NCBI GenBank assembly: GCA_905178155.1
Contig: CAJINV010000005.1
Coordinates: forward strand, 228,254 to 292,253
DNA from: Amoebophrya sp. A120
Lineage: Eukaryota; Protista; Dinoflagellata
Direction: 5' to 3'
DNA length: 64,000 bases
Part shown: piece by piece, positions 4,145 to 62,438 of the stretch
How the letters are laid out: every line of letters begins with the position of its first letter
How positions within the stretch are numbered: the stretch's first letter is position 1
Notes under the pieces: generated by a model
What the model was told of the DNA's origin: nothing
Seen by the model: only the letters and a program-made list of their open reading frames with translations
The model's database searches: none
Made by a program: the position numbers and the translations under genes

Positions 4145-7100
4145 CTACCGCAACTGTATCAAATGCAAAAGTGTCTGGGTCTGGAAGAGTCATGCTGTTT
4201 TTGCATGACACAGAAGGTCTGGCATGGAAGCGCTAGCATCACAGGCTTCGAGAAGCTTCCGCAATGCCGAATCGGCATGACAAATGCCCCATTTTGGTGA
4301 CAGATAGTGGGCAGCTTTTGCTGCCTATGCATGAGAAGTTTTTTTGTGTTGTGAAATGCGCATCACAAGTTTGCATTCTTCCAGACCCAGATATATTTGC
4401 ATTGCATAAACTGGCTGCTGGTGTGGAACAGCTCCTCGGGGGTGCTGAACCCATCCTCGTAGGTGTCCGCCGTGTACTGCCGCGACTGACTCCGCCGCGT
4501 GTAGTACGTCTCCATGGCCCCGCGCTCGCCGTTCGCCGCCGCCAACTGCGCGCTGTCGGCGTACATCAGGGTTGCTCCCGGGGAGAGCGGCCGCCGCACG
4601 TTGCCGTTCGCGTCCGGATGCTGCTGGCGCTGGAGCACGCCCAGCAACTCCGTGACCAACGACAACACCAGCTGCTGGCTCTGCGGGTCCTCGGGCAGGC
4701 TGGAGGGTAAATGGCGCAAATTGGTGTGATATCAAATGCAAAAGTGTCTGGGTCTGGAAGAGTCGTGCTGCTTTTGCATGACACAGAAGGTATGGCATGG
4801 AAGGTCTAGCACCACAGGTTTCGAGACGCTGCCGCAATGCCGAATCTGCATCACAAATGCCCGATTTTGATGACAGAAAGTGGGCAGCTTTTGCTGCCTA
4901 CGCATGAGAGATTTTTATGTGTTGTGAAATGCGCAGCACAAGTTTGCACTCTTCCAGACCCAGACATATTTGCAATTCATATGTGACTCGAAAGGGTGTC
5001 CGCGTACTGTTGCCGGCGCAAAGACGACGAGGACCCAGCTGCGTTCGGCTCGTGCGGGTGCAGCGGGGCCGCGCCAGAAGAATTTCTTCCGCCTTGCTGG
5101 TGCTCCAGTTGGTTGTAAGCAAAATTTCCCGTGGACGACGCGTTGGACAGCGAAGCCAGATTGTACCCGCTGTACTGGTTCGACGCCAACGTGTTCGTGT
5201 TGCTACCCATCGTCGCATATCAAGTGCAAAAATGTCTGGGTCTGGAAACTTGTGATGCTGAACTGTGCACGACTGAAATACTTCCCAAGGCAGCCAAGCA
5301 TGACAAGTTTGCCGAACACTTTGTGATGCGCATTCCGCATGACAAACTGCGCTTTAATATGACCAAAGGGGGCGATTCTTTGTTAGTCATGCAATACAGA
5401 TCTTACAGGAATGTAGGACTAGCATTACAAGGTCCAAGTTTCCAGACCCAGACACTTTTGCATTTGATATCGCAGCGCCGGAATTCAGGTCGTTGTAGTT
5501 GTGTGCTGGACCCCCTCCTGCAGCAGTTCCCTGACCGTGATGACCTCCGAAAGGAGCGAACTGATCGTAGACGGAAGATGAACCGTAGTTGCCGTACCCG
5601 TGGTTGCCTGCTCCGGGAATAAAGCCGGGAGCTGCACCAGCTGCGCCACTGCTACTCAACATCGGATTCGAAGTACTCGCAGCCAGGGGGCCGAACCCCG
5701 AGTGCGTGTTGCCATACAACGGATTGTAACTGTCGTGTTGGAGATCCAGGTACGACGTGGGACCCACCGGGTGGAATTGCGATTGCAACAAACTTGCGCT
5801 CGTGTGGAAAAACGTCGAACCCGTATCATTTGTCCCAGCACTGTGCTGATCGCGGTTGTTGAAAGTCGCTGCATCAACACCTCCCGACGCGGCCCCGGTC
5901 GGGGACAGGCCGTTGCTGTTGTTCCCGCGCTGGTCCTCGACGTGATTGGCTCGCACCGGGCTGTAGTACTGGCGATTCGCGTTGCGGTTGTTCCAAGAGT
6001 TATTGATAATTGTGTCGTCCCGCAGCCGGCTGTTTGGCGAAAAGTCCTCCCGAAAGGCCCGCGCTGCGCCGAACGAGGACGTGGTGGTCACGTTCCCCGT
6101 CGACGTATTCGCATTGGTCGTGGTCTCCGTACTTAGATTGTTCACTAACGAACCATTAGTCGGCGAGTTGGTACTACCATTCTCCATTTCCCGTGTCACG
6201 TCCCGCGAAAACCCCAACCCCGGGGGCTTGCGCGGCGGCAGCGCCGCGTTTTTCACCGTCTTGGATCGGATTTTGGAAGAAGTAGACTGGTGGTTATTGT
6301 TCCCTGAGGTCGAGGAGCTCGAACCACCCGCCACGTAGCCGTTGCTCTGCCCCGCGGTGTTGGAAGAGGAGCTCCCCGGCTGGTCGGAACTCGACCCCGT
6401 GCCGGTGCGGGTGTTGATCGTGGCGTTCGAAGTGTTGGTCGTGGGCTGCTCAACATCCAAATTGATGCGCTGATGACTGTTGATGTTCTGTTGGTGCTTC
6501 TTGGATTTGGTAGTAGTCGGTCCTTGCGAAATGGTGACATTGTGGCGGTGCAAACCAGCAGCAGTTGTACTACTACCCATCGGCGGAGCGCTGATGCTCC
6601 CGGTGATGTTCCAGTTGTGGTCGTTCTGACTAGACGAAAACCCGTCGTAAAAGTTCGCGGGCGCGGTCGAGCTGGAGGTGTTCGCCCAAGAATTACCGTT
6701 GCCACGCGGGGGCGGTGCTGGTGCTCCAGCCGTCGCAGGACCGAGTCCATGCAGGTTATCGTACGTCATGTAGTTGTCCGCTGCGCGCATGCGCATCCAG
6801 CTGGGGATCGTAGTGGCACCATTGTTCATGTTGTTCTGGTTGTTGCCTCCGAGAGGTCCAGAGAACTGTCCGAACATGTCACTCATCTGCTGGGCTGCTT
6901 GAGAATTGTTGTGCAACATCGGAGCAGTCGCTTTCTTAGTCGTACTCGCAGGTTTGCCGTTATTCACCATCCCGCCAGCCGGAGTGGCGGAAAGTGTAGT
7001 CGTACTTTGCTTGCTGTTCTTCTTGGTTTTGCTGGGACGGGGGAGCGAGGACTTCCCCTTGGACAGGTCAGGATTCTCGTTGACACAGGCAGACGCTTCA

Positions 7101-8040: not shown

Positions 8041-8123
8041 AGCCCAGCGGTATATGTATAGATAATATTGATTCAGTATAGCCCAGCGGTGTATATTAGC
8101 CTATTAGATAATATTGATTCAGT
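8041..8123. repeat. Short imperfect tandem duplication
   Basis: AGCCCAGCGGT...TAGATAATATTGATTCAGT occurs twice in tandem. Confidence 0.7.
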
Positions 8124-9541: not shown

Positions 9542-9803
9542 TATCAAATGTAAAAATGTCTGGGTCTGGAAGAATGCGCGATTTGTCATGCAGAATTTCC
9601 ATGACCCATGAGGTCTGGAATGCAGGACACAGCATGACAGATTCTGTGCGATCTTTCCCATGCCTATCCTGCATGAGAAACTGCTTCCCGACTTGGTCAA
9701 AACTGGACGACTTTTGGTAATCATGCAACACAGATTTTTGCATGCTTCAGACTTAGCATGACAAATTGCATTCTTCCAGACCCAGACACTTTTACATTTG
9801 ATA
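9542..9803. mobile_element. MITE family A, 262 bp, TSD TTGCT, apparently intergenic or UTR
   Basis: TIR plus TTGCT on both flanks; no host ORF evident. Confidence 0.93.
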
Positions 9804-9862
9804 TTGCTAGAAGTGCGACCGGCCGAGAAAATCGTTTTCGCAACGCCCATGTCATGTTGTAT

Positions 9863-10177
9863 TATGAAAGTGTCAGAATCAAAATGGACAAAATCGAAAA
9901 ATTTGTGATGCACAAAATCGATGTCAGTTGGAGTCTCAGTTCCCAAGTGGCGCATGACAAATTTCGGGAGCACCCAAATCCAGTCTGTCATGCTGTTTGG
10001 GCAAAGAAGACTGCTCCTGTCATGCTTCTCTGGCAGCGCATACGCATTGCATACCCCTAAACAGGCTTACAATCCGTCTCATGATTTGCCTGCTCCCCAA
10101 TACAGGCCTCCAGTGCCCTACATTTTATGCATCACAAATTTTTCGACTTTGTCGATTTCGATCCTGACACATCCATA
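9863..10177. mobile_element. MITE family B, 315 bp, TSD TGTAT, apparently intergenic or UTR
   Basis: About 50-bp imperfect TIR (TATGAAAGTGTCAGAATC... / ...GATCCTGACACATCCATA); closely similar copy at 50214-50520. Confidence 0.93.
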
Positions 10178-10905: not shown

Positions 10906-13900
10906 TCAGAACACCCGCATCGGCGCCAGCTGCCCTGGTCGATGGTAATTGGATGGTGGTTGCTTCGTGCCCGGCAGCGCGCGACGGGAGCTCGAAATTT
11001 GGTACCGGCCGCCGCTCTGGTGCACCTTCTCGTACACGGGGACTTTGTTGTTCGGACGGTGGTCGTAGCCGTTGTTGGGCACCTTCATGTTCGCGAGCGC
11101 GGGTAGGTTGTGCGGGTACCGCTTCGCAACGCCAGACCCGGACGCCTGATACTGCACGGACCCGCTGGGCCCTTGGCGCTTGACGTCGTTGTAGTTCCTT
11201 TCGTAGTTCCGGTACTGCTGCGCCGGCGTGATTTGCGGTCCGCCGCGCGAGCCTGGGGGGGTTTGGAGTTGTTGTGCGTAGGGGGATTGGTAGGTATTGG
11301 GATCGTTGTAGGGGGTACCCACTTGTTGCTGTCTTGAATTATTGTTTGCATCTCGACTCTGATTCCTACGATGTCGCTCTTGCACGTGATAGCCGTCGAC
11401 TCCCTCGAAATAGCCTCTACTCTCATTTTCGCCCGGTAACGGGTAGTGATCCACGGGCGGTTGCTTGCTGCTGGACGACGGCGTCTGCGCCCTCTCTCCG
11501 TGGTGCTGCTGCTGTGAAGATCCTCTACTGCGCACATTCTGCTGTTGGTTATACGCATCATTATTGTTCCCAGTTGCAGCTCCTGATGGTCCCGGGGTTC
11601 CCAAGCCCATCCGTTCCCTGTCTCTCTGCGCTCTCCTTAATTCTAGTTCCTGTCGTGCGACCTCCAATTCCTCTCTCGATCTGACCCGCCGCTCAGGCCC
11701 GACAATGTTATCTGGCGGCGGCTTCGAGCTACTGCTACTTCGCTCGGCTTGCTGCCTCTGCTGCTGCTGCGCAGCGTAGTTGTCCGGCGTCTGCGCCCGG
11801 GCGTTGGAGCTCGACGACGGTTCTTGGCTGTAGTCAACCCGTCTCGAAGCTGCAGACGAGCCTCCTGCTTGCTCTCCTCTCAACTCGTGATCTCTCCGCA
11901 TTCTTCTCTCGTAGTTGTTCCCAGCAGCGACCGCCACCATCTCCGCGTAGTTGGGTGGTGGCCTCGGCCCGGAATTCGACCCGGGCCGTTGGCTCGACGT
12001 CCCTGGTCGATTTCCGTTTAGCTGCTGCTGGTTCAATAATTGCCTCTGCTGCGCCATCACCGCCCCCGGGTCGACGGCGGACGGCATGGCCGGCGGCCGG
12101 CCGGGCCGGTTGCTGTTGCCGTTGTTTCTTTCCCTCGCCCCCTCGGCGTATTCCTGCACATAAACTGGCAAATTGGTCTTCGGGGGCTCCCGCGGATGAT
12201 CCCGACTCGGCGTTTCGTTATTTGCCCGCACCTGACTGCTTGCAGGCCGGTACTCCCCCCCTGCCTGGCGAACCAGTGCGTCGTTGCCCTGTCTTGAATT
12301 CAGCAGCTGCCTTTGCTGGTCGGCCGAGACCTGTGGATCCCCGTTGTACGAACCGAACCCAGGTGTGTTGTTATCCACTTTTCTCGCGCGGTCCTGCTGG
12401 TCCGCCCCGAGTGGTGTGAGCATGACAGCCCCGCTCCGATTACGATGCTCACGAGTCTCTCTGTCTCTCTCATCAGTACCTTTTTTGGACCGGGTCGTTC
12501 TTTTGGGTAAAAATTTCTGCTGGGGTAACATATTGATATCGGCATTCGAAAAAAAAGAAATAAACGCTCAATGGTTTTATTATTTTTGCAAGACCAAAAT
12601 CTTTTGAGAGAAAATCCCATACCATACCTGAATGTGGCACCTCCTGCCGACGGCTGCTTGAGACTGCGTGCCCTCCAGATGGCGTCCCGAGATGTCGGTA
12701 CGGACCCTGATATGATGTTAAAGTTTTCAGGTTGCCGAATAAAATGTCAATTGCGATCAAGCATGCCAAAACATACTCCAAGTGCATGTTCCTGCATAAG
12801 AAACTTCATATTACCTGTGGGTTCATCTGGTACGGGCCTTGGTTCAAATAGTCCGGGACAACTGGCAAATCCTGTTGAGGTATCAAATGCAAAAATGTCT
12901 GGGTCTGGAGGAATGCAAGTTTGTCATGCTTGTCTGGCATGACTCGAGAATCTGTGTTGCATAGGCACGAAAAAGCCCTCTTACGTGTCATGCAAAAACG
13001 CAGCTTGCCATGCGGAATACGTAAAACATGGCAGCCAAAAAAATTGTCATGCATAGCCGCGGAATGCAGTGCGTCTATCATTCATTTTTAGCATTACATA
13101 CAAGTTTCCAGACCCAGACGCTTTTGCAGTTGATATGAGGCTGCGGCTGTTGTGACTGCTGCTGCAAGTTGTATCGCAATTGGTCCAGCGAGTCTTTCGG
13201 CCGCCGGGATTGCCTCGACCTTCGGTATCTTTCCTCCTGACTTGGTTCCTCCGGGATCGGATCTTCGTACCTGATATTACGATTTTTCTTTTTCGACGAA
13301 AGTGATCGAACGGTATTAATTTTCTCATGCTGGTACTTACCGCGATGGGGATGGAAACAAACTCACTGCATCTGGTGTCATGCAAAAACTCAGGAAACAC
13401 AAACAACTTCTTCATCCCTCTAAATAAGTAATACCTTGGCCTGGGCATCTGCCCTGCCACCTCGGACATGTTTGCGTCCTTGGGCATCTTAATCGTGTTC
13501 AGCAGATCCGTGGGTACGTTCCGCGGCCCGCCCTTCCTGCTGGCCGAGTCGTAATGGATGTGCCGCTGCATGACGGGTAACTGCAGCAAAACGTCCACCG
13601 CCGGGCGTTGCCGGGGATTGACCTGCAGGAGCAGCGCGATCACTTCGTTGACGTCCCGGGAGTAAACCGAGGGGACTCGCGGGTATTGCCCGCGGAGAAT
13701 CTTGCGGTACAGAGACTCCATGTCGTCCGCTCGGAATGGAGGCCTGAACAAGCACATGATTGGTTACAATTTCATCTTCGTGTTTTTAGGTTGTCATGCT
13801 AGTAGAGCACTTCATGCATGTGAGAAGTACATACTCATCAACAGCAGGACCTAGTTTATCATTTTTACCTTTGTAGTACAAAACTGGAACAAACCCCAAA

Positions 13901-16342
13901 TCACGTACCTTAACGCCACCATCTCGTAGATGACGCAGCCTAAGCTCCACATATCCGATTTTGCGTCGTACGGCATGTCCCTCCACACCTCTGGACTGGC
14001 GTAATACGGTGTGCCGGTTTGCGTCATGCACAACCCTCTTTTGGCCACTTTCGACACGTTCAAGTCCCCGAGCTTGACTTCGCCCTTCGACCCCAGAAAA
14101 ACGTTTGCGCACTTCAGGTCGCGATGGAGAATTTTCAACTCGTGCAGGGCCTTCAGCCTGTTGTGGAGGCAGTTCACGAAAATGATTGTGATGCGTGACA
14201 ACAAAAAACAGCACACTGCTTGTCGTGCAGTTTTATTTCATGCTCAAAACATAAATCGCAAACGTGCAAAAGCTAGTATACCCGTGGCACATCCCGAATG
14301 TGCAGTGCCACACGTCGGCTTCGCGAAAGAAAGTTCGCATTTTCTGGTGGTGACTAATCTTCTGGAACAGGTCGCCGCCGTCTGCGTACTCAGTGATGAT
14401 GCACAAACACCTGATTGGTTTTTTCTCATGCATACAATAATCCATCACTGGCGTTATTTCTCTTTTGCTTTTCGCACAAGCTGCCTGACAATGAAATCCG
14501 ATAGGACGACAATAGAGATTTTATCTGCGAGTACTTACCTCGACGCGTCGTCATAGAACGACTCCTTGTAGCCGATGACGTTTTCGTGCTGAATGGAAGC
14601 AAGGAGCCGCACTTCGTTCAGCGAGTTTTGCTTTTCCTTCTCGGACAAATTCGGCAATTTTACCTTCTTCAAAGCGTAGATTTTGTTGTCCGATAGTCGC
14701 AAAATTTTGTACACCGCGGAATAAGCGCCCTCCCCGAGCAACGCCATCTGCCGGAAATCCTTCAAACTCGTAGACACCGCCGGGGGTAGGCCGTTTTTCA
14801 ATTCGGAGATGATTTTCTCGTCGGTGGCGGAGATGGGAGGCTGATAAATTTAGTTTTTTTTCTTTGGAAAATTGGAATTTCTCACACGAACCTTGATCTT
14901 GAATACGTAAAAACAACGAACTGCGCTTCTCCTTCTCTCGTTCATGCTTAAAAAGAGACAAGTTCAAACGATGTACAAAACGGAGGACGACATCACCAGA
15001 ACCAGTATTCCCAAAATAAAACAAAGTACTCTTTTATCCTGCGACGAGCTGCTTTTGCTCTTCGAGTTATTCCCGACGGAGGGGTCTTCCGTCATGTCGC
15101 CTCGTCTTCTTCTCCGCTCACTTTTGTTCAACTCCCGATCGGGTGAACCGACGCCCGACCCCGTAGAGGAACTCCGGTGCTTGCTTATCATTTGTAAAAA
15201 CGTCCCCACCTGATAGCTGTAATGCAATTCTGCATGCTGAAGACGTTTCTCATGCGGAGCCCCATGAGAAGCATTCTCTAGTCGCGTTTCGGAATTTTTC
15301 ACGCTTCAATCAGCATTATAGGCTGGATTCGTGATGCTGGTAAACTAGCTAAACAGTCTTGCACTATGTGGCCAAACTTGTCATGCGCAACAGCCAAGCC
15401 CTGTGGATTTGTCTAGCAGATTTGCCATCTTGACTATGGGGCGGGGACGTTTTTACACAAGATATTGCTGTGCGACGACTCCACCGGCTCTCCGGTGATC
15501 ATGCTGGACGGGTTTATCAAATGTAAAAATGTCTGGGTCTGGAAGATTCCGAGATTTGTCATGCACATTTTGCATGACTCCTGATGTCTGTGATGCATGC
15601 CCTAGCATCAGAAATTTTTTGCGAGCTTTCGGATGCGTATCCTGCATGACAAATGCCCTCATCGTGTAGCACAAAGTCGAATCCTCTTGCTAGTCATGCA
15701 ACACAGATTTTCTTAGAATCCGAAGACAGCATCAGAAGTTGCATCCTTCCAGACCCAGACATTTTTACAATCCATAGGGTTATTGCTGCTACTATTGTTG
15801 TTTCCACTGGAGGAGCCTCCACCCGCGTTTGCAGCACTGCCCAGAACGTTGTTGCTGTTGCTTCCACCTCCACCGCTGACAGAGTCCAGCACGTTACTCG
15901 GCGGTAGCGCCGTGGAGGAGCTCGGCGTCCCGGAACCTACCACCACGCCGGACGTTGCATTTGCTCCCGATGAATCGCCGTTGCTGCTGGTGCTCGACCT
16001 CCTTTTCTTCATTTCCCGTTCTGCCTTCTGCTGCTGCGCCCGCACCTCCGCGGCCTGCTGCTGCATGGCGGCCGCCTGCGCCTGCAGCTTCTCCGCCTGC
16101 TGCTCCAAGTCGACGGCTTGCTGCAGTGACATGGCGTGGGGGGTGTTGGACCCGACCAGGCTGTCGACGGAATTCAGAGACGAAGAGTGTCGGTGGTCCT
16201 CGGTGCTGGAGGTCGCTGTCGTCGTGTTCGTCGCTCGACTGCTAGACGCGACGACGTTGGCAGATTTCACAGAGACTAACGGTTCTACGGGTCCGCCAGC
16301 GGTCGGCGTGCCGGTTCCGACCGGTGGCTGACTGCTAGACAT
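10906..16342 (-). CDS. NIMA-related (NEK) Ser/Thr kinase with long low-complexity N- and C-terminal extensions
   Basis: Motifs GEGAYSAV, YALKKV, NEVRLLASIQHENVIGYKESF, ILHRDLKCANVFL, KLGDLNVSK, TQTGTPYYASPE, KSDMWSLG lie across GT-AG-separated exons (13.4-14.8 kb). The N-terminal part (16342-15030) is joined through an inferred GT-AG intron 14841-15029. The junction to ORF 10906-12531 is less certain. Contains three introners. Confidence 0.85.
12881..13135. mobile_element. Introner/MITE family A, 255 bp, TSD TGAGG
   Basis: TIR plus TSD; excision gives QQPQPQQDLPVV in frame. Confidence 0.95.
15186..15464. mobile_element. Introner/MITE family C, 279 bp, TSD TTGCT
   Basis: TIR TATCATTTGTAAAAACGTCCCC / GGGGACGTTTTTACACAAGATA; excision gives ESSHSKHRSS; copies at 36119 and 61012. 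Confidence 0.95.
15515..15776. mobile_element. Introner/MITE family A, 262 bp, TSD GGGTT
   Basis: TIR plus TSD; excision gives SNNPSSMITG in frame. Confidence 0.95.
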
Positions 16343-33064: not shown

Positions 33065-33834
33065 GCGGGAGAACAGCGATGTAACTGGTGTGGGTGTGTC
33101 TCGGTGAAAAAATTGGGATGAACGTGCAGGCCTTTCGAGTAGCAAAGATTTTGTAGAGATTGAAATTTTGCATTTGCAGCTCCTTTTCCCGAACCTAGCG
33201 AGTTGTCATTATAGCAAAATCCTGAGAATGAACCCAAATTTATTTTCGAGTCAAGCTTAAGTACCGCTGTAAATGTCAAATTAAAAAAGTAGAAGATACA
33301 TGTATCAAAAACGCACGTAAAGCTTGGCCAGAGTGCACTATTTCTGAAACAATGAAAGCTGCTACCGCAGGGGAATCGTTTATTTTTTATTTTGCAAAAC
33401 CTTATTTTCGATGTAGTATTGCAATTGGATAACGCTGGCAGTTGTTTTTGTCTTGTGGTCTGCTAAACTTTTGTTTTTTGGAAGTCTCCCTGGCTTTTGC
33501 AGTTATCTAATTTTCAAATTGACGCTCGAGAATACTAGTTTTCGCAAAGCAAATGCTTTTGACAGGAAGAACCGCTGAAGATTGTCGCAGCGCCTTTTCG
33601 AACTATTTTTTTAACTGACAGTGAAGAAACTACGACGCCGTGAAGGCAGAATCATGAAGCACAATGCTGTTTTGGGTTCTTTCGTGGCGTTGTTGCAAGC
33701 CTACATTTCTGCGAGTCGAGCGGGTACTTAAGACAAACGTTTGTCAATAATGCAGCTCTACTTCTTACTTGCTTCGCATGTCAAAGTCCTCCACCAGAGG
33801 AGGCCTGGCATCGCTTTGTCCTTAACAAGAAACC

Positions 33835-50110: not shown

Positions 50111-53100
50111 ATGGTGACCGTCGCGGAGCCGCTTTCGGACTTCAAGGACCTCGGTCCGGTGGTCTACCAGGAGTCGAAAATCTTGGACAACGAAATACAC
50201 CTCCTCTGCGTGCTATGGAGGTGTCAGAATCGAAATTGACAAAAGCCAAAAATTTGTGATGCGCAACATCGTTGTCAGTTGGAGCCTCAGTTTCCAAGTG
50301 GCGCATGACAAATTTCGGGAGCACCCAAATCCAGTCCGTCATGCTGTTTGGGCAAAGAAGACTGCTCCTGTCATGCTACTGTGGCAGCGCATTGCGTACC
50401 CCTAAACAGGCTTGCAATCGGTCTCATTTGCCTGCTCCCCAAGACAGGCCTCCAGTGCCCTACATTTTATGCATCACAAACTATTTCCACTTTGACGATT
50501 TCGATCCTGACACATCCATACGTGCACGACAGCAGGGAAAAGAAGTTTGTCAACTTCGAAGCGTACTCCTTCGAGACCGGGAAAGTGAGCAGAATACAAT
50601 GGGACTACGTCAACTTCGACTCACACTTTCGGTAGCATTTTGATGTGACTGTTGTTTTTCTTTTTGCGGGTACGAATTGGAGTTCTTCTTGAAGTAGAGC
50701 GATTCTTCTTTTGCTATTATGAACGTGATCAGTTTATTTACTGCATGTTTTTACACAAGTACAAACCTCAACAAAGGTTCAACGCCGAGCTGATGAACCC
50801 GAACAACCGAGAAGGCCGCTACCACTGGATCTGCGAGCGACTAAACTTCGTGTCCGATGGCAAAGGCGGAAGAAAACTGGAGCTGTGCGAGCCGACCGAC
50901 GACTTGCCGCAGGTGGCGGACAAGGCGAGAAATTTCAAAATTCCAACGGGCAGGATGAATTACGCAGACAGGCAGCGGCTACGGCTGGAAATGGAGAGAT
51001 TGCCGGTATAGTACAAGGATCGATTCTGTCATCTTCATGCATAAGGGTCGTTGCTCGTTCTGCATAAAGCGATCTATTTTATTCTCGACTGAAGTGGTGT
51101 CCCATTACAGGTTGTTTAGAACAAACCGTGTTTAAGTATGCACTACCCATCAACAAATTAACAGAAACGACGGAATGAGAACATCTTGCGCATGGCAGCC
51201 GAGTTTAAGGAAGCCTTCTGTGCCGAAATCGCGGAGATGCAGGAGATGGACAGAAGAAAGGCAGAATTGCGCGCACAAAGAATAGAGGAAGAACGAAGGG
51301 TGCGATACGCCGAAATTTGCGAGGTATAACTTTTTTTTTTCTTAATTTGGGGATAATCATAATGTCGTGTGTCATGCAATAAAAATTGCAGTTTCACAGC
51401 CGATGGATTATTGCGAAACAAGAAATACGAAAATAATCAGCAGGACGATGTTGTCTAGCAACACAAAATGATGATATCCATCTAGGTCCGAAGGCAGGAG
51501 AACGTGCTGAAGCAGGACTATGGAGACAAGGATCGAAAACGTGAAAGAATCATCAAGGATAAAGACGACACCAGGAATGCTGCATCGGTACTATTCATTT
51601 GGATTTTCCGTCTTTATTCACATAATTTGCCATGCGGAATATGAAACACAGTAGATGTTGCCCACAGTTGTCATGCAGGGCTTGCATGGCTTTGTCTCAA
51701 AACGAAAAAACTGGAAGATGAAAGAACTCAACCTCCCCCCTCATCAGCTCGCGGAAATTCGTGTAGTCCTGAAAGCGCACGATGAGCAGAGGCAAGAGAC
51801 TGCGCGGAAAATTGCGGCGCAGCGACAAGCAAAGAAGGACGAGAGGGCGGAGCAAGCCAGGCTTGCCGAGGAGCGCTTCGCGGCGGACCAGGCAGCGGAA
51901 GATAGAAGAGGCGAAAACTGGGAGAAGAGGGAGGAAAGGCTAGAGCACAAGGCGGTATTGCATTGTTGTGGTTCGATGAAAGCGGCGTCTTCATCACATG
52001 GATGATGTGGATAATTTTCTTTACACAGGGCTGCTTGCTTTCTTTGGTTGTGCACGGCAAATTGGAATTTGTTGTAAAATCCAAAAATTTTCAGATTCGG
52101 CTCCAAGCTGAGCGTGCGTCCTACCTAGACGGAATTTCCCGAACCGAGCAGGCACGGTCGGAGAGAAAAAAGGAGTTAGCGCACGACCAGCAGGTTATCC
52201 GGCAAAACCTCTGGGCAAAAGCCTCAGCGAAGGACGAGAAGAGAAAAGCGTACTTTTTTCATTTTGCTGCTTCTGCATCGAATCATAGTGTAATAGAAAA
52301 AGAGTTTTTTTTTTCTGGGTTTCAACCACCCACAATCTATCATCACCACAGGGACAACAAGGCTGCATTAGAAGCTCTTGCCACGCAGAAAGAAAATGCG
52401 AAAAACGCCGCCTCGCTCAGCATGGGGAAGAAGAAAAAGGTATATTTTTAGTGTACTTAATTTTCAATCCTGTCTACTTCTTAGTTTCTCACGTCCGCTG
52501 GCATGGCAGACTTGGTTTACGCTGTTTTTTCTACATGCCGAATTGATCGATTTTCCCTAATATTCGGCAGGAACGCAAGTCCGACGCACGGATGGACGCA
52601 GTCGAGGCTATCAAATGCAAATATGTCTGGGTCTGGAACATTGCCAGGTTTGTCATGCATATTTTGTATGATCCATGACGCCTGGGCCTGTAATGCATGA
52701 TCTAGCATAACAGATTTTTAGAGGGATTCTTAATGCCTATTCCGCATGAGAAATGCCCTCTCCACGTAACACAAACTGGATTCCCGTTGCTGGTCATGCA
52801 ATACAGATTTTTTTGGACTTCAAAGACAGCATTACAAGTTGCAACCTTCCAGACCCAGACGCTTTTGCAATGCATAGAGGCGGAGATGCGGCAACAGCTG
52901 GAGGCAGAAGGCAAGCAGAACGAGAACGCGCAGAAGCGCGACGCCAAGTTCAAGAGGATCGAGGAGAAAAAGAACGACCGCGAGGTGCAGAAGGTGATCA
53001 AGTGGAAGGAACGCAAGATAGACGAGGCTTACAACAAGCAGAGAGAGTATAATTCTTGTTGCCCATGATCATCTTCTCATGCAGAACAGAGCCTGACATT

Positions 53101-53623
53101 CAGAAAATCCTTCTTGTCAACATGCGAGCTGCGCAAGTACAAAGTATATGGAAAAAATTTTCTTCAGACGCGACGAGACCGCCGCTGCGGTGGCCGAGGC
53201 TTACAAGGAGCAAAAGGCCGAAGAAGACCGTGAACGCGACATCCTGGCGCGTAAGCAGCGGATGCGCGACATGGCGACGGAACGCAAGCTTGGGGATATC
53301 AAATGCAAAAATGTCTGGGTCTGGAAGATTCTGAGACTTGTTATGCAAGTTTTGCATGAGCCATGATGTCTGTGATGCATGCCCTAGCATCAGAGATTTT
53401 TTTAGGGCTTCCGGATGCCTATTTCGCATGACAAATGCCTTCTTCCCGTAGCAAAAAGACACTCCCTTTGCTGCTCATGCAGTACAGATGTTTTTGGAAT
53501 CCAAATGCAGCATCACAAGTTGCACCCTTCCAGACCCAGACACTTTTGCAATCCATAGGGGAGCGCATGAGGCGACTAGTACCCGGGTTCAAGGACTCGG
53601 GCTCGGCCTTCAAGCCGTTGTGA
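50111..53623 (+). CDS. Hypothetical protein: globular N-terminus plus long charged coiled coil
   Basis: MVTVAEPLSDFKDLGPVVYQ...; several phase-matched GT-AG introns and three introners give a continuous frame to ...SAFKPL* at 53623. Confidence 0.8.
50214..50520. mobile_element. Introner/MITE family B, 307 bp, TSD CGTGC
   Basis: TIR plus TSD; excision gives HLLCVHDSREK. Confidence 0.95.
52609..52876. mobile_element. Introner/MITE family A, 268 bp, TSD GAGGC
   Basis: TIR plus TSD; excision gives DAVEAEMRQQ. Confidence 0.95.
53297..53557. mobile_element. Introner/MITE family A, 261 bp, TSD GGGGA
   Basis: TIR plus TSD; excision gives RKLGERMRR. Confidence 0.95.
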
Positions 53624-54975: not shown

Positions 54976-57900
54976 ATGGCGTCCGCCACTGCGAACACCC
55001 AGGGCCCTCGGCGGTCGAAGATGATCGGGAAGGAGATCACCCAATGGCTCCACGAGCAGGAGCAGGCAAGGAAAAGCCGGATCCGGTGGTCGCCGCCCAT
55101 CTTCGAGAAGCACAGCCGGATGTCGCGGAAGCATATCAAATGCAAAGATGTCTGGGTCTGGAAGATTCCGGGATTTGTGATGCATATTTTGTATGCTCGA
55201 TGATGCATGTAATGCATGATCTAGCATCACAGATTTTTAGAGGGCTTCCTGATGCCTATTCCGCATGAGAAATGCCCTCTCCGCGTAACACAAACCGGGC
55301 TCCTGTTGCTGGCCACGCAATACAGATTTTTTTGGAATCCAAAGACAGCATGATTCCAGACCCAGACATTTTTGCAATGCATAAAGCAGTACCTGGAAAA
55401 CATGAATCTTTCCATGGCGCCGCAGGAGATCGACATGTTGGCAGAGGAGTTGGAAATCGCCGAGGAGCTGCAGGAGTGGATGGTTTTCGACCTGGTCTTC
55501 GGCTTTCTCGTCATTTTTAACGCGTTGTTTATCGGTTTGGAGGACATATCAAATGCAAAAATGTCTGGGTCTGGAATGTTGCCGGGTTTGTCATGCATAT
55601 TTTGCATGACCCACAATGACTGTAATGCATGACCTAGCGTCACAGATTTTTAGAGAGCTTCCTGATGCCTATTCCGCATGACAAATGCCCTCCCCGCGTA
55701 GCACAGACTAGACTCCTCGCGCTGATCATGCAATACAGATTTTTTTAGAGGCCGAAGTTAGCATCACAAGTTCCAACTGTCCAGACCCAGACATTTTTGC
55801 AATCCATAGGACAGCTACAACTACGAGGAGGACGCGACCACGATCACGTCCTGGTACATCTTCGAGTGCTATCAACTGCAAAAATGTCTGGGTTTGGAAA
55901 GTTGTGATGTAAGGAAGGGAATAGTGAGCACAGGCATACTGTAGTGCGCAGCGCAGCATGACAAGTTTTTCCGTGGTTCAGAGTTGCGTACTCCGCATGA
56001 GAAACTGCGTTTTTGCATGACAGGCAAGAGGAGCTCTTTGCGGGCACGCAATACAGAGTTGAGAGTCATGCCTGACTAGCATGACAAATCTCGCAATTTC
56101 CCAGACCCAGAGCAGATATTTGCATATGCATAAGTGCCTCTTTTTCGTGCTGTTTTCCGTCGAGTGGGTGCTGCGGTTCATCGGGGCGAAGTCCTGGCAA
56201 AAGTTGGCGGAAGATAGCTGGTATGGATTGCAAAAATGTCTGGGTCTGGAAGATTGCAACTTGTGATGCTGTTTTTGGATTCCAAAAAAATCTGTATTGC
56301 ATGACCAGCAACAGGACTCCAGTTTGTGTTACGCGGAGAGGGCATTTCTCATGCGGAATAGGCATTAGGAAGCACAATAAAAATCAGTGATGCTAGATCA
56401 TGCATTAGAGGCATCAATCATCATACAAAATATGCATGACAAGTCCGCATTCTTCCAGACCCAGACATTTTTGCACTTGACAGCTGGATGATCATCGATA
56501 TTTTGCTGCTAGCGATAACGGGGTTTGACCTCTTCATCTTCAAGTTCGCACTGACCGAGGTGGATGGTATATTGGATTATTTGTTCTTCGTACTCAAATT
56601 TCATTTGTGCCTTGAGAAGATGTGGTGCGGAGAAATGCTTTCTGTGTTGTGATGATGTCTTCTGTCGTCTACAGCAGCAGACCCCATAAGTCTCCCATCG
56701 TACTACTCTGTTTTACCATCTTGTTCGTCAGGCGCCGGCAACCTGACGATTTTCCGCGCCTTCCGTATTTTCCGTCTTGCCCGGCTTGTCCGCGTTTTCA
56801 AGCTACTCAAGTCCGTCGCCCGGCTCGTCACGGGCCTGCAGATCTCGTTCCGGACGCTGTTCTGGGCGATTTTTCTCATTGCCGTCACGGTGTTCGTCTT
56901 CGCGGTGCTGATGGTAGAGCTAGTCGGGAAAAACGAGGAGGCGTACGATGCCGTGGTACGGAACAACTGGAAGGATTTGAGTTCCAGCGCCACCAGCTTT
57001 ATCCTGCTCGCCACGGCCTCCGGGTGGCAGCGCAGGGTGGACGCGTTAAAGGACGCGAACGCGCTCTTTTTGGTCCCCATTCTGCTCTTCATGCTCTTAG
57101 TCGTGGTCGGCATTTTTAACATGATCATCGGTTACGCAGGGTGGTTTGAGTGGGTCGTGTTTGGGGTGATGTTCGGGGAGGTTGTGATATGTCTATATGC
57201 AGCTGCTGACAACAGTAGTCGATTCTTCGTCATAACTGCAGTGGCTATTCAAGAAGTAGTGTAAAAAGCAGACCCCTGATCTCACCCCAAAACGACCCGC
57301 ATTCCCTTTGAATGTCGCGTGATGGTGTACACCGCCCTCGCGATCGAGGAGAGCGCCCGCAGGTCCGGCGAGGCGCAGCGGAATTTCGAGCACCGGCTGG
57401 GGCTGATTCGGTTGAAAAAAATTCTCTCGTCCGTCAACAACCGGCCCTTGCTCCGGAACCCGCATAGAATGGGCGTGGTCGAGTTTGCGGAACTGTACGA
57501 CGAGGGTGCTTTTCAGAAGCAAATCCAGTTTCTGAAACCTTTCCTTCCCCTAAACAAGCTCCGGGAATTGGTGCATTTGATCGCGGAGGTGAACCCAGTC
57601 ACCCAGGAATACGACTTTTCCATCGACAGCTTCATCCACGTGCTGTCCTGGCTCAGCGAGCGGGTGTTTCTGCCGCGCGACATGGTGTACCTGCGCGCCG
57701 CCAGCTCGCACGCGCTGGAGATGATGGGGCATTTGAAGGGGCAAACGAATCAGGCGGTGGCGAACTTCATGCACAAACTGGACGCCTGCTACAAGGAGGC
57801 GCAGGAGATCTACCCGGTGCTGCAGGTGCCCGACACGCTGTCCGTCGCCCCGAAGCGGCCGCCGGGGAAGAAGCAGAGCAGTGCATCGTCCTCGTTGGTC

Positions 57901-60900
57901 GCGTCCAAGGCGGAGACCGCGCAGGCGCTGTCCGTGGTTTTGGACGGGCTCGAGCCGTTCATTTCCCCCGCCAAGCGGGCATCGAGCGCCAAGAGGGGAC
58001 GGATGATCTCGAAACAGGAGATCGAGGAGGCGCGCACGAGGAAACGGCAGGCGAAACGGAGTCAGAAGGTGAAAGAATTTTTACCGCCGGTCCACGAACA
58101 GGATGATTTTTTAGGAGAGCAGGACTCTCATTCGCAACGACAAGGGACGAGAGAAGCTTCACAAGATAGAGGCAATAATTCCACCTTGGCGGGAGACGGT
58201 GCGAGTAGTCGGTGCACCCTGGATTTCCTCCCGGAAGACCGCGCGGCGTATATCGAAAGGAAAAATCCCCCCTCCCCATATCAAAACGGAATTTCTGATG
58301 CTGGATATGTGTACACAAATTGCTGAAGAGCATTGCAGGCCCATACTAAGCGTGAGTAGAGAGGTTTTGGCCTAGGCGCATAGCATGAAAAATATCCGAG
58401 CTGTAGGTCCAAAAGCATGACAAACCGCTTGCACAATGCGGCGGAGCCTGCGGAGTTGCCTTCTTGCAAGACAGACACGATTTGTGACCACAAATCAGCA
58501 TCACAGATTTCAAAAAGTATACCGCTTCAGTATGGCGAGGGGGGATTTTCCCCTACGATAGCGTACCCGGATCAGATCGCCTACCCGAAGTCCGGGCGGG
58601 AGACGCTGACGCTGTGGCACCCGTTCGTCAACGCTTTTGAACCCCAGTTCGCGCCCATGGAGTACGAACACCTCCGGCTCGGCGACAACATCCGAATTCT
58701 ACCCCATCTAGGCAACACGCCCCAAGCGGACCTGCATGGTTTGGCCCGGTGGGCGCAGTGCCCCTGGAACGACTTCCCCTTGACACTAGTGGACCAGTGC
58801 AACGAGTTCGTGGACCGGGAACGGCAGGGCGTGATGAAGAAGCAGGAAACGTACCACAAGTCAACCTTGGCGGAGATGCGGCGATTGGAAACCGTGCGGA
58901 AGCCGGGCGCGAGTTCTGCCGACGTGCAGATCGAACAGGGGTTTTTGCATTTCGGACAGCACCGGAAGCACATTCCGAAGGAGGTGTTGGACTCGTTGAA
59001 CAACACGGGTGGAGGTTTTTCCACCTCCTTCGCATCCTTCACCTCCTCGAAAACGCTCGACGCGTTGACCGCGTCGGACACGTGTCTGGGCAAGTTGAAG
59101 AACCTGTTTGTCCGGATTTGCTGCTGCGGAAGCAGCGAGGAGGAAAACGCGAGGCGGCGGGATATCTTGTGCAAAAGTATCGTACTCGTATTGCAGTCAT
59201 GCATAACCAATTTTATTTCTCATGCTGAGGAAATTTGTAATTCATTTATACGAGTGCGATACTTGTTTTGCAGTTCATACGGGAGCAGCAGCGGCAACGA
59301 CAGCAGGTGAGCCCGACCTCGAAAGCCAACCTGTTCGCGATGGTGAGCCCCCGCAGTCAGGGCAGCGGGACCCCGCGGAGTGGGGACCGGAGCGGAGAGG
59401 AGAGCAACGAAGGGGACCACGCAGCGGCGGGCGGGGCAGACGACCAGGCCCCCGTGGCTGACGCGGAGGACGAGGCGAGTCTGGTGTTTTTCCGGGAGGC
59501 CGTAAACAACGCTTTGTTTCCCGTGGACTGCTTTTGGTTCGCCGCCGCGCTGCTCCACGCGATTCTCATGGGCCTGTCGCTGTCCGAGCGCACGAACTTC
59601 AACACGACCGCCCACGTGGACAGCGGCACGTCGAGCAACGACGCCTTCCGCCTCATCGAGGGGGCTTTTTTGGTCATTTTCATCGGGGAAAATCTGCTGC
59701 GGTACTTGCTGTTCATCCAGTCGGAATATAACAACGACGTGATTTTTACGTTGAACATCCTCCCGCAACGGCAGTACCTCTGCGTGGGTTTATCCCTCTT
59801 CCCCTGCGAGTTCCCCTACTTTTTGCGTGCGGACCCCTACTGCGCGCTCGATCTCGCCCTCATCTCGGCCAGCGCGTTCGCGAACATTTCCCTGCTGCCG
59901 CTGCGCCTCCCCTTCGTGCAGTTTTTGCGGTTCGCGCGCCACGACTTTCCGAATTTCGACGAGGGGTTACTGCAATGAAAAATGCCCCCACCCCCCATTT
60001 GTATTGCAAACCTTTCCAAATGAAACATTCGCCCTCTTGCATCTATCAGCATCACAGGTTTCCAATTGTGAATAGCAAAAATTTGTATTGCAAAAGACCC
60101 CAGCAAGAGCGGCGCTTGTCATGCAAGCGATGCGATACTCGCCTAGACTCTGCATCAGAAAGATTCATATGCCTTTCATGCATGACAAAAAGTTTTCATT
60201 TGGAAACTGCGCATCACAAATATTTGCAATGTCAGGGGTGGGGGGCACTTTTCACTGTAATAGGGGTGGCTGTTGTTGCAGGGCATGCAGTCCGCGGTCC
60301 GGACCCTCTTCTGGGTGGGGTATCAAATGCAAAAATGTCTGGGTCTGGAAGATCCTGAGACTTGTCATGCACGTTTTGCATGAGCCATGATGTCTGTGAT
60401 GCATGCCCTAGCATCGCAGGGTTTTTGAGGGATTCTTGATGCCTATCCCGCATGACAAGTGCCCTCTCCGCGTAGCAAAAATTGGATTCCTTTTGCTGCT
60501 CACGCAACGCAAATTTCTTAGACATCCGAATGCAGCATCACAAGTTCCAACCTTCCAGACCCAGACGCTTTTACATTTGATATGGGGGTGGGGTCCGCGA
60601 TTCTGGTGTACTTGATCAGCATCTTCGGAATGCTCCTCCTCCGTGACCAGGACATCGTGAATGCCCAGGTGTATTTCGGAACCCTTGCTTCCTCGAGTTT
60701 GACGGTGATGCAGATTCTACGATGCGCGAAAGATGATTAAGCATCGTTGTTGCTTCGCATACGCGGAGTCGAGTCAAGATAGATTACATTTTCGCGGTTG
60801 CTGCAACAAAGCAAGTAGATGCGACTTTCACTTTTTCGAGGAGCACGCCAGGCAGAAGTCTTCCTGGCATTGTAGAAAGACTTTTATCGTTTCATAAGCG

Positions 60901-62438
60901 TATGCGAAGTGATCAATCCTTTTGCAATGTCCATAAGCAGCGACTTTCGACAATTGGTCTGCGGTGGTGAAGCCGATGGTGGACGCGCACAGTCAGGTGT
61001 TTATCTTTTTCTATCCTATGTAAAAACGTCCCCACCCCAGAGTTGTCGTGCAAATCTGCATGGTAAAAATGCTTCTCATGCGGAGCCCCATGAGAGGCAA
61101 TTTTTAGTCGTGTTTCGCAATTTGTCATGCTCCAATCGGCATGATGTGCTAGATCTGTGATGCTGCTGAACTAGCTAAACAGGATTACACTATGAGGCCA
61201 AATTTGTCATGCGGACCTCCGAAAACTTGGGGACTTGTGTTGCAGACTTTCCATCTTGACTATGGTGTGGGGATGTTTTTACATATGATATTTTCGCGAT
61301 CATCATCACGCTGATGAATTTCGGGCTCCTGAACATCGTGATTGGAATTTTTTGCGAGACGGCCTACGAAATTCTCGAAGAACGAAGAAAACAAACGGAC
61401 ATGCGGCGGTACTCGCAGATGCGTGGAGACATGGTACTGTCGATAGTGTATGTAAGTGCGTGCTGTATGTCTAGCAGGTCTGCTGGGGACCGGGATTGCG
61501 GCTATTTCGACAATCACGCGTTTGAGGATTGAACGGAATATTTGTGAAGGTATTAGTTTCGTTCATCTATTTACCATGCAGTCGCTTTCCTTTTACAGTG
61601 GTACCGCAAACCACATTCAGGGCGGGCTTCGATCAAGGTTGGCCGCCTACGTATCGCTCGACGCGGAAGGCGAGGTCTGGATTGACCGCAGACTAATCGA
61701 CAAAATGTTCGAAAGCAACACCGTATCCAGTGGTGCAGCGAGTCATTCATGAGCAGGGTCGTCGAGGAATTACCAACTGAAATTAAGATGCGAACGATGG
61801 AGGATATGATGTCACGTCGTGTAGAAAATCCTGCTCTCGTGTATGCATCCTTCGTGTGACAGACGCAGAAGATAATAAAACCCAAGAAATGTCGAAGATT
61901 TCTATACACTATCAAAAAATGAATCTGCACTTTGGTATTGTTTCTCGACTGATCATGTCCTAACTCAGCGAGTTGCACCGGTGGATACGCCAATTCAAGC
62001 AGTCGGGACGGCGACCAAAGCGCGGCGCTGCAGATAGCCGGCATGAAGTCCAGTCAGGTGCAAATGATTTTGGATCTGTTAGACGTGGACCCGCTGGACC
62101 AACGAGGCGAGCAGTCCATGTCCGAGTTCTTCACGGCGCTAGAAGCGTGGCAGAGGCAGCACGTGCAGGCCATTGACGTGTTTGCGTTGCGGGTTCACTC
62201 CGAAACGTTGCTGCGCAAGGTCCGGCTACTGGAGGATCTGGTGGCGTCTGTCTCGCGGGAGTACGAGCGATGTCTATCACCTTGCACAACATCCTCACAA
62301 CCCGCTCCTGCTTGTGTGGTCGTACTTTCTCAACAGGGTCACAAACTGCACAACGTCCCCACCGCGCTTGCAAACCTGGCCTTAGCTTCTGCATCCTCTG
62401 ATTGCATGATAAATTCCGCAAGTCGCGCAAACGTTTAA
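54976..62438 (+). CDS. Two-repeat (2x6TM) voltage-gated cation channel-like protein, 3' end uncertain
   Basis: After splicing: S2 FSVEWVLRF, S3 DSWMIIDILL, S4 FRAFRIFRLARLVRVFK, pore LLATASGW, S6 GIFNMIIG. Second repeat: FIGENLLR, DPYCALD, pore YFGTLASSSLTVMQI.TFDNW, S6 FGLLNIVIG. Contains nine introners. Confidence 0.85.
55134..55383. mobile_element. Introner/MITE family A, 250 bp, TSD AAGCA
   Basis: TIR plus TSD; excision gives MSRKQYLEN. Confidence 0.95.
55547..55808. mobile_element. Introner/MITE family A, 262 bp, TSD GGACA
   Basis: TIR plus TSD; excision gives IGLEDSYNYE. Confidence 0.95.
55870..56132. mobile_element. Introner/MITE family A, 263 bp, TSD AGTGC
   Basis: TIR (right copy has small insertions) plus TSD; excision gives YIFECLFFVLF. 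Confidence 0.93.
56222..56482. mobile_element. Introner/MITE family A, 261 bp, TSD GCTGG
   Basis: TIR (right end GACA) plus TSD; excision gives EDSWMIID; inverted relative to the 55134 copy. Confidence 0.93.
58251..58560. mobile_element. Introner/MITE family D, 310 bp, TSD GCGTA
   Basis: TIR TATCGAAAGGAAAAATCCCCCCTC / GAGGGGGGATTTTCCCCTACGATA; excision gives RAAYPDQIA. Confidence 0.95.
59163..59279. mobile_element. Introner/MITE family E, 117 bp, TSD CGGGA
   Basis: TIR shared with the 30231 copy; excision gives ARRREQQRQ. Confidence 0.93.
59968..60262. mobile_element. Introner/MITE family F, 295 bp, TSD GGGGT
   Basis: TIR TACTGCAATGAAAAATGCCCCCACCCC / GGGGTGGGGGCACTTTTCACTGTAATA; excision gives FDEGWLLLQG. 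Confidence 0.93.
60321..60582. mobile_element. Introner/MITE family A, 262 bp, TSD TGGGG
   Basis: TIR plus TSD; excision gives LFWVGVGSAIL. Confidence 0.95.
61012..61290. mobile_element. Introner/MITE family C, 279 bp, TSD TTTTC
   Basis: TIR plus TSD; excision gives VFIFFAIIITL (S6 helix). Confidence 0.95.

Follow-up and report, generated by a model that had tools for sequence, protein, structure and literature searches.

Miniature inverted-repeat introner elements in coding exons of Amoebophrya sp. A120: absence from mature transcripts and retention in genomic DNA

Introns without GT-AG ends, supported by RNA and about 240 nt in length, were described for the genome of Amoebophrya sp. A120 by Farhat et al. 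(2021, BMC Biol 19:1; PMC7789003), whose assembly comprises 115.5 Mb with an N50 of 9.243 Mb. The introner elements (IEs) involved, 29,850 in number and occupying 17% of the assembly, carry terminal inverted repeats (IRs) that form a hairpin, with TAT + 7 nt + AAA as the IR motif, and direct repeats (DRs) of 3–5 nt across the exon/intron borders. The DR/IR layout is also present in 15% of the canonical A120 introns, and the IEs yield ordinary GT-AG introns when the target is NNAGG. Nearly all of the spliceosomal proteins are present in A120, neither U1 nor a transposase was found, and no minor-spliceosome snRNAs were reported; the authors call for an alternate excision mechanism, and a figure legend leaves the cut register open (PMC7789003). 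A later study names A120 as one of the species that carry diverse introners of the TIR type (PMC12130899).

The introners of Micromonas, Aureococcus, Polarella and Symbiodiniaceae (Gozashti et al. 2022, PMC9860276; 2025, PMC12130899) resemble those of A120 in that they are mobile elements whose insertion gives rise to an intron, and in that they are spliced out together with one copy of the target site duplication (TSD). Canonical introners, however, supply or co-opt GT/GC-AG sites, which is possible for at most two to three of the 24 coding-context elements in the 64,000-nt stretch of A120 DNA analyzed here (the window). MITE-derived non-GT/AG introns are reported for Fritillaria borealis (Henriet et al. 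2019, via bioRxiv 10.1101/2025.08.15.670264), which, according to this preprint, shares with A120 the escape from GT/AG in most introns of its genome. There, fixed ends are preferred (AG/AC, AG/AT) and splicing is credited to a spliceosome with duplicated U2AF, whereas the ends of the window elements are variable in every register.

Inventory and structure of the elements

The 26 elements of the window are members of the published A120 IEs, and the phenomenon is thus already known: organism and elements are the same, with no essential difference from the earlier description. Transcript-supported non-GT-AG ends, hairpin-forming IRs, the direct repeat and the IR motif were all found in the window elements. 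The TIR sequence itself gave no match in the supplement text of PMC7789003. Added to that description are a constant length of 5 bp for the direct repeat in all 26 elements (3–5 nt in the paper), IRs that extend over 24–35 nt, the removal of both orientations within one gene, and a cut register constrained by one imperfect repeat.

A reading of the letters alone (the sequence-only reading) had placed 26 elements of six families between 4157 and 61290, and all of them were recovered with the same family counts, namely 16 A, 2 B, 3 C, 2 D, 2 of the short family (E) and 1 single element (F) (Table 1). The Amoebophrya introns, which this reading had brought in as a parallel from elsewhere, belong to the very genome from which the window comes. 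The elements measure 117–322 bp, those of the short family 117–144 bp, and they start with TAT and finish with ATA, giving TA...TA termini. In 24 of the 26, the first 24 nt can pair with the other end at 18–24 positions, and in the remaining two the right ends are degenerate. The 5-bp TSD, which had been ascribed to every element, is exact in 25 and carries one mismatch in the element at 35717, while displaced-flank controls gave 0/260. When the window was scanned blindly for ends with at least 18 of 24 complementary positions enclosed by 5-bp direct repeats, 24 matches were returned, against none in each of 10 shuffles. The TSDs nearly always differ between sites, as had been stated, with TTGCT present twice (9542 and 15186). 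The A120-type motif is found at the 5′ end of 24 and at the 3′ end of 20 elements, its A-run being absent from family B (two copies).

Table 1 Elements and introns of the window (positions in the window; host-gene strand)
Feature	Position	Strand	Remark
Family A, 252 bp, TSD AACTG	4157..4408	-	frame claim covers only 3 codons ahead of stop
Family A, 252 bp, TSD TGTGA	4730..4981	-	inside 751-aa ORF
Family A, 252 bp, TSD TCGCA	5218..5469	-	inside 751-aa ORF
Family A, 262 bp, TSD TTGCT	9542..9803	.	non-coding context
Family B, 315 bp, TSD TGTAT	9863..10177	.	non-coding context; without A-run
Family A, 255 bp, TSD TGAGG (sense CCTCA)	12881..13135	-	short ORF only
Family C, 279 bp, TSD TTGCT	15186..15464	-	flank-frame test
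Family A, 262 bp, TSD GGGTT (sense AACCC)	15515..15776	-	flank-frame test
Family A, 252 bp, TSD TATTC	17724..17975	-	inside 236-aa ORF
Short family (E), 144 bp, TSD ACGAG	30231..30374	+	inside 449-aa ORF
Family D, 322 bp, imperfect TSD CAGCA/CACCA, degenerate right end	35717..36038	+	skipped by published protein, G of 5′ copy kept
Family C, 279 bp, TSD GCCGC	36119..36397	+	skipped by published protein
Family A, 253 bp, TSD TGATG	36453..36705	+	skipped by published protein
Family A, 251 bp, TSD GCCCG	47730..47980	+	interrupts ankyrin repeat
Family B, 307 bp, TSD CGTGC	50214..50520	+	short ORF only
Family A, 268 bp, TSD GAGGC (GC-AG possible)	52609..52876	+	short ORF only
Family A, 261 bp, TSD GGGGA	53297..53557	+	weak coding support, short ORF only
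Family A, 250 bp, TSD AAGCA	55134..55383	+	missing in cDNA contig (skip 55129-55383, 255 nt)
Family A, 262 bp, TSD GGACA	55547..55808	+	missing in cDNA contig
Family A, 263 bp, TSD AGTGC	55870..56132	+	missing in cDNA contig
Family A, 261 bp, TSD GCTGG, internal orientation opposite to neighbours	56222..56482	+	missing in cDNA contig
Ordinary GT-AG intron, 165 nt, same channel gene	56567..56731	+	missing in cDNA contig
Single-copy non-canonical intron, 186 nt, GT..TC or TT..CG, hairpin-forming, without TA..TA ends	57131..57316	+	not in the sequence-only reading
Family D, 310 bp, TSD GCGTA	58251..58560	+	missing in cDNA contig (skip 58246-58560, 315 nt)
Short family (E), 117 bp, TSD CGGGA	59163..59279	+	missing in cDNA contig (skip 59158-59279, 122 nt)
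Single element (F), 295 bp, TSD GGGGT	59968..60262	+	missing in cDNA contig
Family A, 262 bp, TSD TGGGG	60321..60582	+	missing in cDNA contig
Family C, 279 bp, TSD TTTTC (G in no register)	61012..61290	+	short ORF only

Genome-wide (115,520,608 bases searched), the family-A TIR core gave 11,851 forward and 11,803 reverse matches, corresponding to about 11,800 family-A copies. With TIRs, a TSD of fixed length, small size without an ORF and high copy number, the elements show the features by which MITEs are recognized, and the proposal that they are non-autonomous DNA transposons is supported in the form of MITE-like TIR/TSD elements. An Rfam search of the window returned no family. An assembly gap at 27905–27966, flanked by poly-C (C19/C17), lies more than 2.2 kb off the nearest element; it is part of none, and no result depends on it.

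The suggested search for a long, transposase-encoding element with the same ends did not yield one. Family-A ends were found on one long element only (G000:C2:9169095-9179289, TSD CGGAG, with an rve ORF), which was considered as an autonomous partner and then rejected. A plain family-A MITE makes up its first 224 and last 50 nt, and between them lie a Copia element, present in single copy and bounded by LTRs of 276 bp, and a patchwork of further repeats, so that it represents a nested insertion. When the genome was searched in six frames with Pfam models, only rve matched; RAG1/Transib, hAT dimerisation, MULE, Harbinger DDE_Tnp_4, piggyBac and DDE_3 were not found in these searches, which introner-split genes could escape. 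A hAT candidate amounted to one weak match (E = 0.33) without supporting domains nearby. Four identical 1,986-aa rve ORFs were assigned to an LTR retrotransposon of 7 kb, which has LTRs of 366 bp and also 5-bp TSDs, and the rve-only ORF at C1:4344747, sitting between direct repeats 7.1 kb apart, is likewise of the LTR type.

Reading frames, transcripts and genomic DNA

Twenty-four elements lie in a coding context, the exceptions being those at 9542 and 9863. The length of the element plus 5 nt is not divisible by three in 15 of the 26 cases, so restoration of the frame is a real test. Deletion of the element with one TSD copy gave ORFs spanning more than one element site (751 aa across three, 702 aa across three and 818 aa across four), and independently called coding frames on the 48-nt flanks were in phase at 20 of the 24 elements (binomial P = 6.6e-7). 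Of the 24 elements for which frame restoration had been claimed, the one at 4157 offers only 3 codons ahead of a stop, and the supporting ORFs at 53297, 50214, 52609, 61012 and 12881 are short (Table 1). Among the motifs said to be rebuilt, an ankyrin repeat begins at the second residue of the exon that follows the element at 47730, and Pfam Ion_trans positions 91–226 map to exon 56731–57129, so that S1–S3 must fall in four small upstream exons and the domain is split across elements. The database searches behind these assignments were run exon by exon, and the joined models were only translated.

The removal from transcripts was observed in the channel gene. A cDNA-type contig of 5,289 nt (contig 9 of the public run X3) lacks eight elements, each by exactly the element plus 5 nt, which is the junction that the sequence-only reading had named as support. 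One ordinary GT-AG intron of the same gene is absent from this contig as well. The X3 run, whose type is otherwise guessed, is taken to be cDNA because the GT-AG intron is missing and exon–exon 31-mers are present; the missing GT-AG intron likewise indicates that RNA processing is at work. An exon model without the eight elements (each plus 5 nt), the GT-AG intron and a single-copy non-canonical intron matches all of the X3 record coordinates and contains an open frame of 1,123 codons, seen only when spliced. Additionally, exon 33826–35715 is 100% identical over 630 aa to the NCBI entry "unnamed protein product [Amoebophrya sp. A120]", and this published protein skips the three further elements at 35717, 36119 and 36453. 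Among the 24 coding-context elements, eight are covered by the cDNA contig, three by the published protein and the other 13 by reading frames only; the transcript support consists of an assembled contig and a published gene model, the raw RNA runs X9 and X10 having yielded 4 and 2 reads.

At the same time, contigs of the DNA run X1 connect exons to element ends at a depth of 41–51, equal to that of unique sequence, and no element-sized deletion was present among the 15 of 280 X1 joints listed. The elements remain in genomic DNA, and mature transcripts lack precisely the element plus one TSD copy, with the frame restored. Of the two alternatives that the sequence-only reading had left, the X1 contigs argue against removal from the DNA; the contig-level data are compatible with rare empty-site DNA molecules, which may exist.

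Boundaries and possible routes of excision

GT-AG is present in no sliding register of any element, as the sequence-only reading had stated. A GC-AG register could be drawn at just two coding-context elements (52609 and 35717) and a GA-AG register at one (55547), and neither occurs in the other 21; to these registers, AT-AC had to be added, which exists among the coding-context elements only at 4730 (TCACA), 55547 (GGACA) and 35717 (family D), so that, judged by end dinucleotides, the elements are not of the U12 AT-AC type. The end bases vary in every register, none of which fixes bases on both sides; the boundaries at 61012 are entirely T/C, and several others are without any G. Family A is oriented 8 versus 7 relative to the gene, and both orientations are removed. 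Terminal stems of 20–41 pairs were predicted for all 26 elements. In the element at 35717, where the two TSD copies differ, retention of the G of the 5′ copy in the protein gives a cut register of k of at least 3; this one imperfect TSD, together with the published gene model, would place the 5′ cut 0–2 nt ahead of the first T of the element and the 3′ cut 3–5 nt beyond its last A. Nine more imperfect-TSD elements at other genome loci were examined, and their flanking exons were too short to match annotated proteins.

It is highly probable that the window elements, being published IEs, were inserted as MITEs and are removed from RNA via cut sites set by a stem. Pairing of the inverted repeats within the pre-mRNA would form the predicted stem, which would place the two TSD copies side by side, and the cut sites would be determined by position relative to the stem rather than by terminal dinucleotides. 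Our best guess for the excising enzyme, held at about even chances, is the resident spliceosome, apparently without U1 snRNA, for which a weak search of the genome (41 of 2,102 candidates scored) gave no match. A U1-less spliceosome may read N|TAT(C/G) as the 5′ site, with the first base free. To our knowledge, arbitrary first and last intron bases have no precedent in spliceosomal catalysis, which, for example at 61012, weighs against this guess.

Cleavage by a structure-specific endonuclease that reads the long terminal stem and cuts at fixed distances from its base, followed by joining of the exons by an RNA ligase, would be a pathway separate from the spliceosome, in line with the proposal of the sequence-only reading; it is a possible though less favored route, resembling tRNA/bulge-helix-bulge splicing and the structure-dependent "nonconventional" introns of euglenids. 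Such a route would account for boundaries that share no conserved dinucleotide pair and in several cases have no G, for the predicted stem in every element, for a removed length that is always the element plus 5 nt, and for orientation-independent removal, which needs no directional branch or polypyrimidine signal; PMC7789003 itself asks for an alternate mechanism. However, the analysis yielded no candidate enzyme, A120 has almost the full set of spliceosomal proteins, and the GT-AG introns arising from NNAGG targets, together with the DR/IR layout in canonical introns, suggest one machinery (PMC7789003); the Fritillaria introns are, according to the preprint, handled by a modified spliceosome. 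The specific version of this route, a non-spliceosomal, hairpin-reading nuclease/ligase with the fixed register given above, is rated as less likely than not.

That the host genes are pseudogenes whose frames are restored by chance in GC-rich, ORF-rich sequence is practically out of the question: many long overlapping ORFs do exist on both strands, and a simple comparison of longest ORFs against shifted deletions gave no clear answer, but the in-phase flanks, the long frame of the spliced channel model and the Pfam domain split across elements speak against chance, and the spliced forms backed by the cDNA contig and the published protein already refute it for 11 elements. Ciliate internal eliminated sequences are TA-bounded and are cut from DNA by a domesticated transposase, and they share with the A120 elements the TA at both ends, the transposon origin and the precise, gene-restoring removal. 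A comparable DNA excision in transcriptionally active nuclei, the cDNA mirroring rearranged DNA, is very improbable here. The termini and the precise restoration of the target do recall transposase-mediated excision, and the contigs leave room for rare empty-site molecules, but the ciliate sequences leave the DNA, whereas the A120 elements stay at full depth in the DNA run, from unique exons into element ends, and are missing only in cDNA; moreover, the listed joints show no deletion of element size, the assembled genome retains its family-A copies, and a GT-AG intron is missing along with the elements from the same contig.

Coding exons of A120 host miniature transposons in the tens of thousands, whose removal is precise and does without splice-site dinucleotides. 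This system was published for A120 in 2021 and taken up again in 2025, and no new kind of system is added by the present analysis; the remaining value lies in how the elements are excised and what mobilizes them. Elements whose TSD copies differ by one base would expose the cut register in existing RNA-seq data, and one example already narrows it to k of at least 3. If the hairpin nuclease/ligase were true, it would represent a third route of nuclear mRNA intron removal, by which a MITE invades coding sequence harmlessly.

Inserted elements and their relation to published introners

Repeat searching and blind scanning of the window recovered 26 elements with terminal inverted repeats (TIRs) and 5-bp target site duplications (TSDs) between positions 4157 and 61290. 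The scan, which required a 5-bp direct repeat around ends complementary at 18 or more of 24 positions with a spacing of 100–1500 bp, gave 24 matches in the real window against none in ten shuffles, and the 5-bp flanks were identical in 25 of the 26 elements versus 0 of 260 displaced-flank pairs. The observation, made in a sequence-only reading of this DNA, is real and well supported. The elements, named by their start coordinates, are 117–322 bp in size, sum to 10.6% of the window, and begin with TAT and end with ATA, except for 59968 (TAC at the start) and 56222 (ACA at the end). Their inverted repeats reach 24–35 nt, and all 26 predicted folds carry a terminal stem of 20–41 pairs, with a stability far above that of shuffled sequences. 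Grouping by similarity resulted in a family A of 16 copies, sharing 70–91% identity within the window, groups of two, three, two and two, and one single copy; the family-A TIR core occurs genome-wide 11,851 times in the forward and 11,803 times in the reverse orientation.

The phenomenon is already known for the A120 genome (115.5 Mb, scaffold N50 of 9.243 Mb; Farhat et al. 2021, PMC7789003). More than 60% of its RNA-supported introns are non-canonical; these have a length of about 240 nt and carry hairpin-forming inverted repeats of 8–20 nt, the motif of which is TAT followed by seven more variable bases and a run of three or more A, and border-spanning direct repeats of 3–5 nt; 29,850 introner elements in 1,954 families constitute 17% of the assembly, and both a transposase and U1 were not found (PMC7789003). 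These introners include diverse TIR transposons as well as odd TIR-flanked elements with integrase-like ORFs (PMC12130899). The same motif, TAT followed by seven bases and an A-run, is located at the 5' end of 24 of the 26 window elements. Since the phenomenon has been published for A120 (PMC7789003, PMC12130899), the present finding is a correct rediscovery. The sequence-only reading had mentioned Amoebophrya as a parallel, whereas the window itself comes from this genus.

Features of the window and of other genome loci
Feature	Position	Remarks
Tandem arrays	31442–32275	13-nt (CTTAAGCGAAGCA-like, >30 units) and 16-nt units; first part opposite in orientation to the remainder
Assembly gap	27905–27966	nearest element >2.2 kb away; element claims independent of the gap
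Gap surroundings	27866–28006	C19 and C17 homopolymer runs on either side; typical sequencing/assembly break
Element 35717	35717–36038	sole imperfect flank pair (CAGCA/CACCA); right end degenerate
Further one-mismatch elements	e.g. L013:3870–4132, L025:5263–5527	nine in other genome loci
Possible old element	62275–62512	238 bp, running from TAT to ATA; ends complementary at 15 of 24 positions; flanking pair ATGTC/CTGTC; beyond the range of the sequence-only reading
Segments skipped in X3 contig	55129–55383; 58246–58560; 59158–59279	255, 315 and 122 nt
Ordinary intron, channel gene	56567–56731	GT-AG
Single-copy intron	57131–57316	186 nt, absent from the cDNA contig; ends GT..TC or TT..CG, no TA..TA termini; 1-nt direct repeat; long imperfect hairpin reaching into exons; not listed in the sequence-only reading; looks like one of the single-copy non-canonical introns of PMC7789003
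LTR retrotransposon	G000:C8, about 3694608–3701653 (L012+L016), and three other copies	7 kb; 1,986-aa ORF; 366-bp LTRs; copies 98.7–99.7% identical, different 5-bp TSD each
Family-A element with nested insertions	G000:C2:9169095–9179289 (L023:7096 to L024:7290)	10.2 kb; perfect family-A ends; TSD CGGAG
Integrase ORF locus	G000:C13:1149000–1168999 (L021+L022)	ORF of ~1,087 aa; domains: integrase zinc-binding and rve, no reverse transcriptase match; flanked by inverted GC-rich tandem-repeat blocks ~10 kb apart; ends not of TAT...ATA type; possibly a DNA transposon of the Ginger or Polinton kind

Removal from transcripts and restoration of reading frames

Four public sequencing runs were compared with positions 54700–60690. 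Run X1 behaved as genomic DNA, with a depth of ~41–51 for unique sequence; its contigs extended from the exons 26–30 nt into the element ends at a depth equal to that of unique sequence, and the elements reached summed depths of 10^4–10^5. At the same time, a 5,289-nt contig of run X3 covered the exons and skipped the intervening segments. An exon model of the channel gene, from which eight elements were deleted, each together with exactly 5 nt, along with the GT-AG intron and the non-canonical single-copy intron, matched all record coordinates of this contig, including its 224-nt and 54-nt stretches, and opened a frame of 1,123 codons; the spliced model was translated as joined sequence, and database searches were done one exon at a time. 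X3, the RNA origin of which was otherwise only guessed, is taken as cDNA because the ordinary intron is also missing and because a de Bruijn contig spans an exon-exon joint only if the reads contain that joint. Junctions lacking the element and exactly 5 nt, as the sequence-only reading had proposed, were thus seen for eight elements. Runs X9–X11, RNA data of 2026 under the same species label, held just 2–4 reads over 6 kb of expressed genes and may represent another strain, another life stage or host-dominated samples.

Additionally, exon 33826–35715 (630 aa) showed 100% identity with a 698-aa NCBI "unnamed protein product [Amoebophrya sp. A120]", which continues straight across elements 35717, 36119 and 36453; these three are therefore introns already in the gene annotation of the authors.

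Excision of the elements with one 5-bp copy each opened frames of 751 aa (three elements), 702 aa (three) and 818 aa (four). This restoration is a real test, because the length of element plus 5 nt is indivisible by three in 15 of the 26 cases. With the coding frame called independently on each side over 48 nt, using a codon table from element-free ORFs, both sides were in phase at 20 of 24 elements (P = 6.6e-7, chance 1/3). Four elements failed this independent test: 4157, with a stop three codons past the junction; 35717, the boundary of which was misplaced in the test as run; 53297, a weak case; and 59163, a near tie whose removal was nonetheless RNA-verified. The sequence surrounding 9542 and 9863 is non-coding and lower in GC. 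As for protein motifs, an ankyrin repeat picks up at residue 2 of the exon downstream of 47730, and Pfam Ion_trans positions 91–226 map to exon 56731–57129, so the first 90 positions must fall in the four small exons between which family-A elements lie.

Search for an autonomous partner

A six-frame genome search with seven DDE-type Pfam families, which introner-split transposase genes would escape, matched rve alone, and several of the rve loci examined were Copia/Gypsy-type retroelements. One of these retroelements, the 7-kb LTR retrotransposon with four copies, seems to have been active recently; its TSDs, at 5 bp, are as long as those of the introner elements. The one long element with family-A ends that turned up, 10.2 kb in size, was rejected as an autonomous partner: it is a MITE filled by nested insertions, among them a Copia-type retroelement (LTRs of 276 bp) and fragments from three or more further repeat families.

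Splice-site registers and the mechanism of removal

As had been claimed, no GT-AG was found on the sense strand in any of the six equivalent registers of any element, and in several elements every boundary is free of G. GC-AG can be formed at 52609 and GA-AG at 55547, in agreement with the earlier assignment to GAGGC and GGACA only, but 35717 also permits GC-AG; an AT-AC register exists for 4730, 55547 and 35717. An NNAGG target would yield a canonical intron, G↓TAT...ATA NNAG↓, which explains the canonical introns of the same layout in PMC7789003; this form is absent among the sense-strand targets of the window. For element 35717, the published protein reads ...SFS↓TVAL... and needs the G of the 5' repeat copy, so the 5' cut falls 0–2 nt ahead of the element and the 3' cut 3–5 nt past its end (register k ≥ 3), a limit taken from the gene model of this single element.

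Insertion with a 5-bp duplication, retention of the element in the DNA and exact loss of the element plus 5 nt from transcripts were all observed, and removal depends on neither the terminal dinucleotides nor the orientation of the element. Family-A copies lie in the two internal orientations relative to the host gene in 8 versus 7 cases, and the eight RNA-verified elements include both; the signal must therefore be symmetric, i.e., the TIRs or a structure formed by them. Pairing of the TIRs into a stem probably brings the two repeat copies together and fixes the cut sites. The transposon origin and the precise removal from RNA stand, whereas a pathway separate from GT-AG splicing is unproven. 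Excision at the DNA level is unlikely, because the X1 contigs keep the elements joined to the exons at unique depth. A dedicated hairpin nuclease/ligase is a less probable but serious rival, since the first and last intron bases are fully arbitrary, for which we know of no spliceosomal precedent. We lean slightly, at an about even chance, toward a relaxed, U1-less spliceosome that would read N↓TAT(C/G) as the 5' site. The Rfam U1 search of the whole genome gave no match, a weak negative (41 of 2,102 candidates scored) in line with PMC7789003. The lean to the spliceosome rests on the precedent of Fritillaria, where, as summarised in bioRxiv 10.1101/2025.08.15.670264, it is able to adapt to MITE-derived non-GT/AG introns (Henriet et al. 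2019), and on the fact that the same elements give GT-AG introns at suitable targets.
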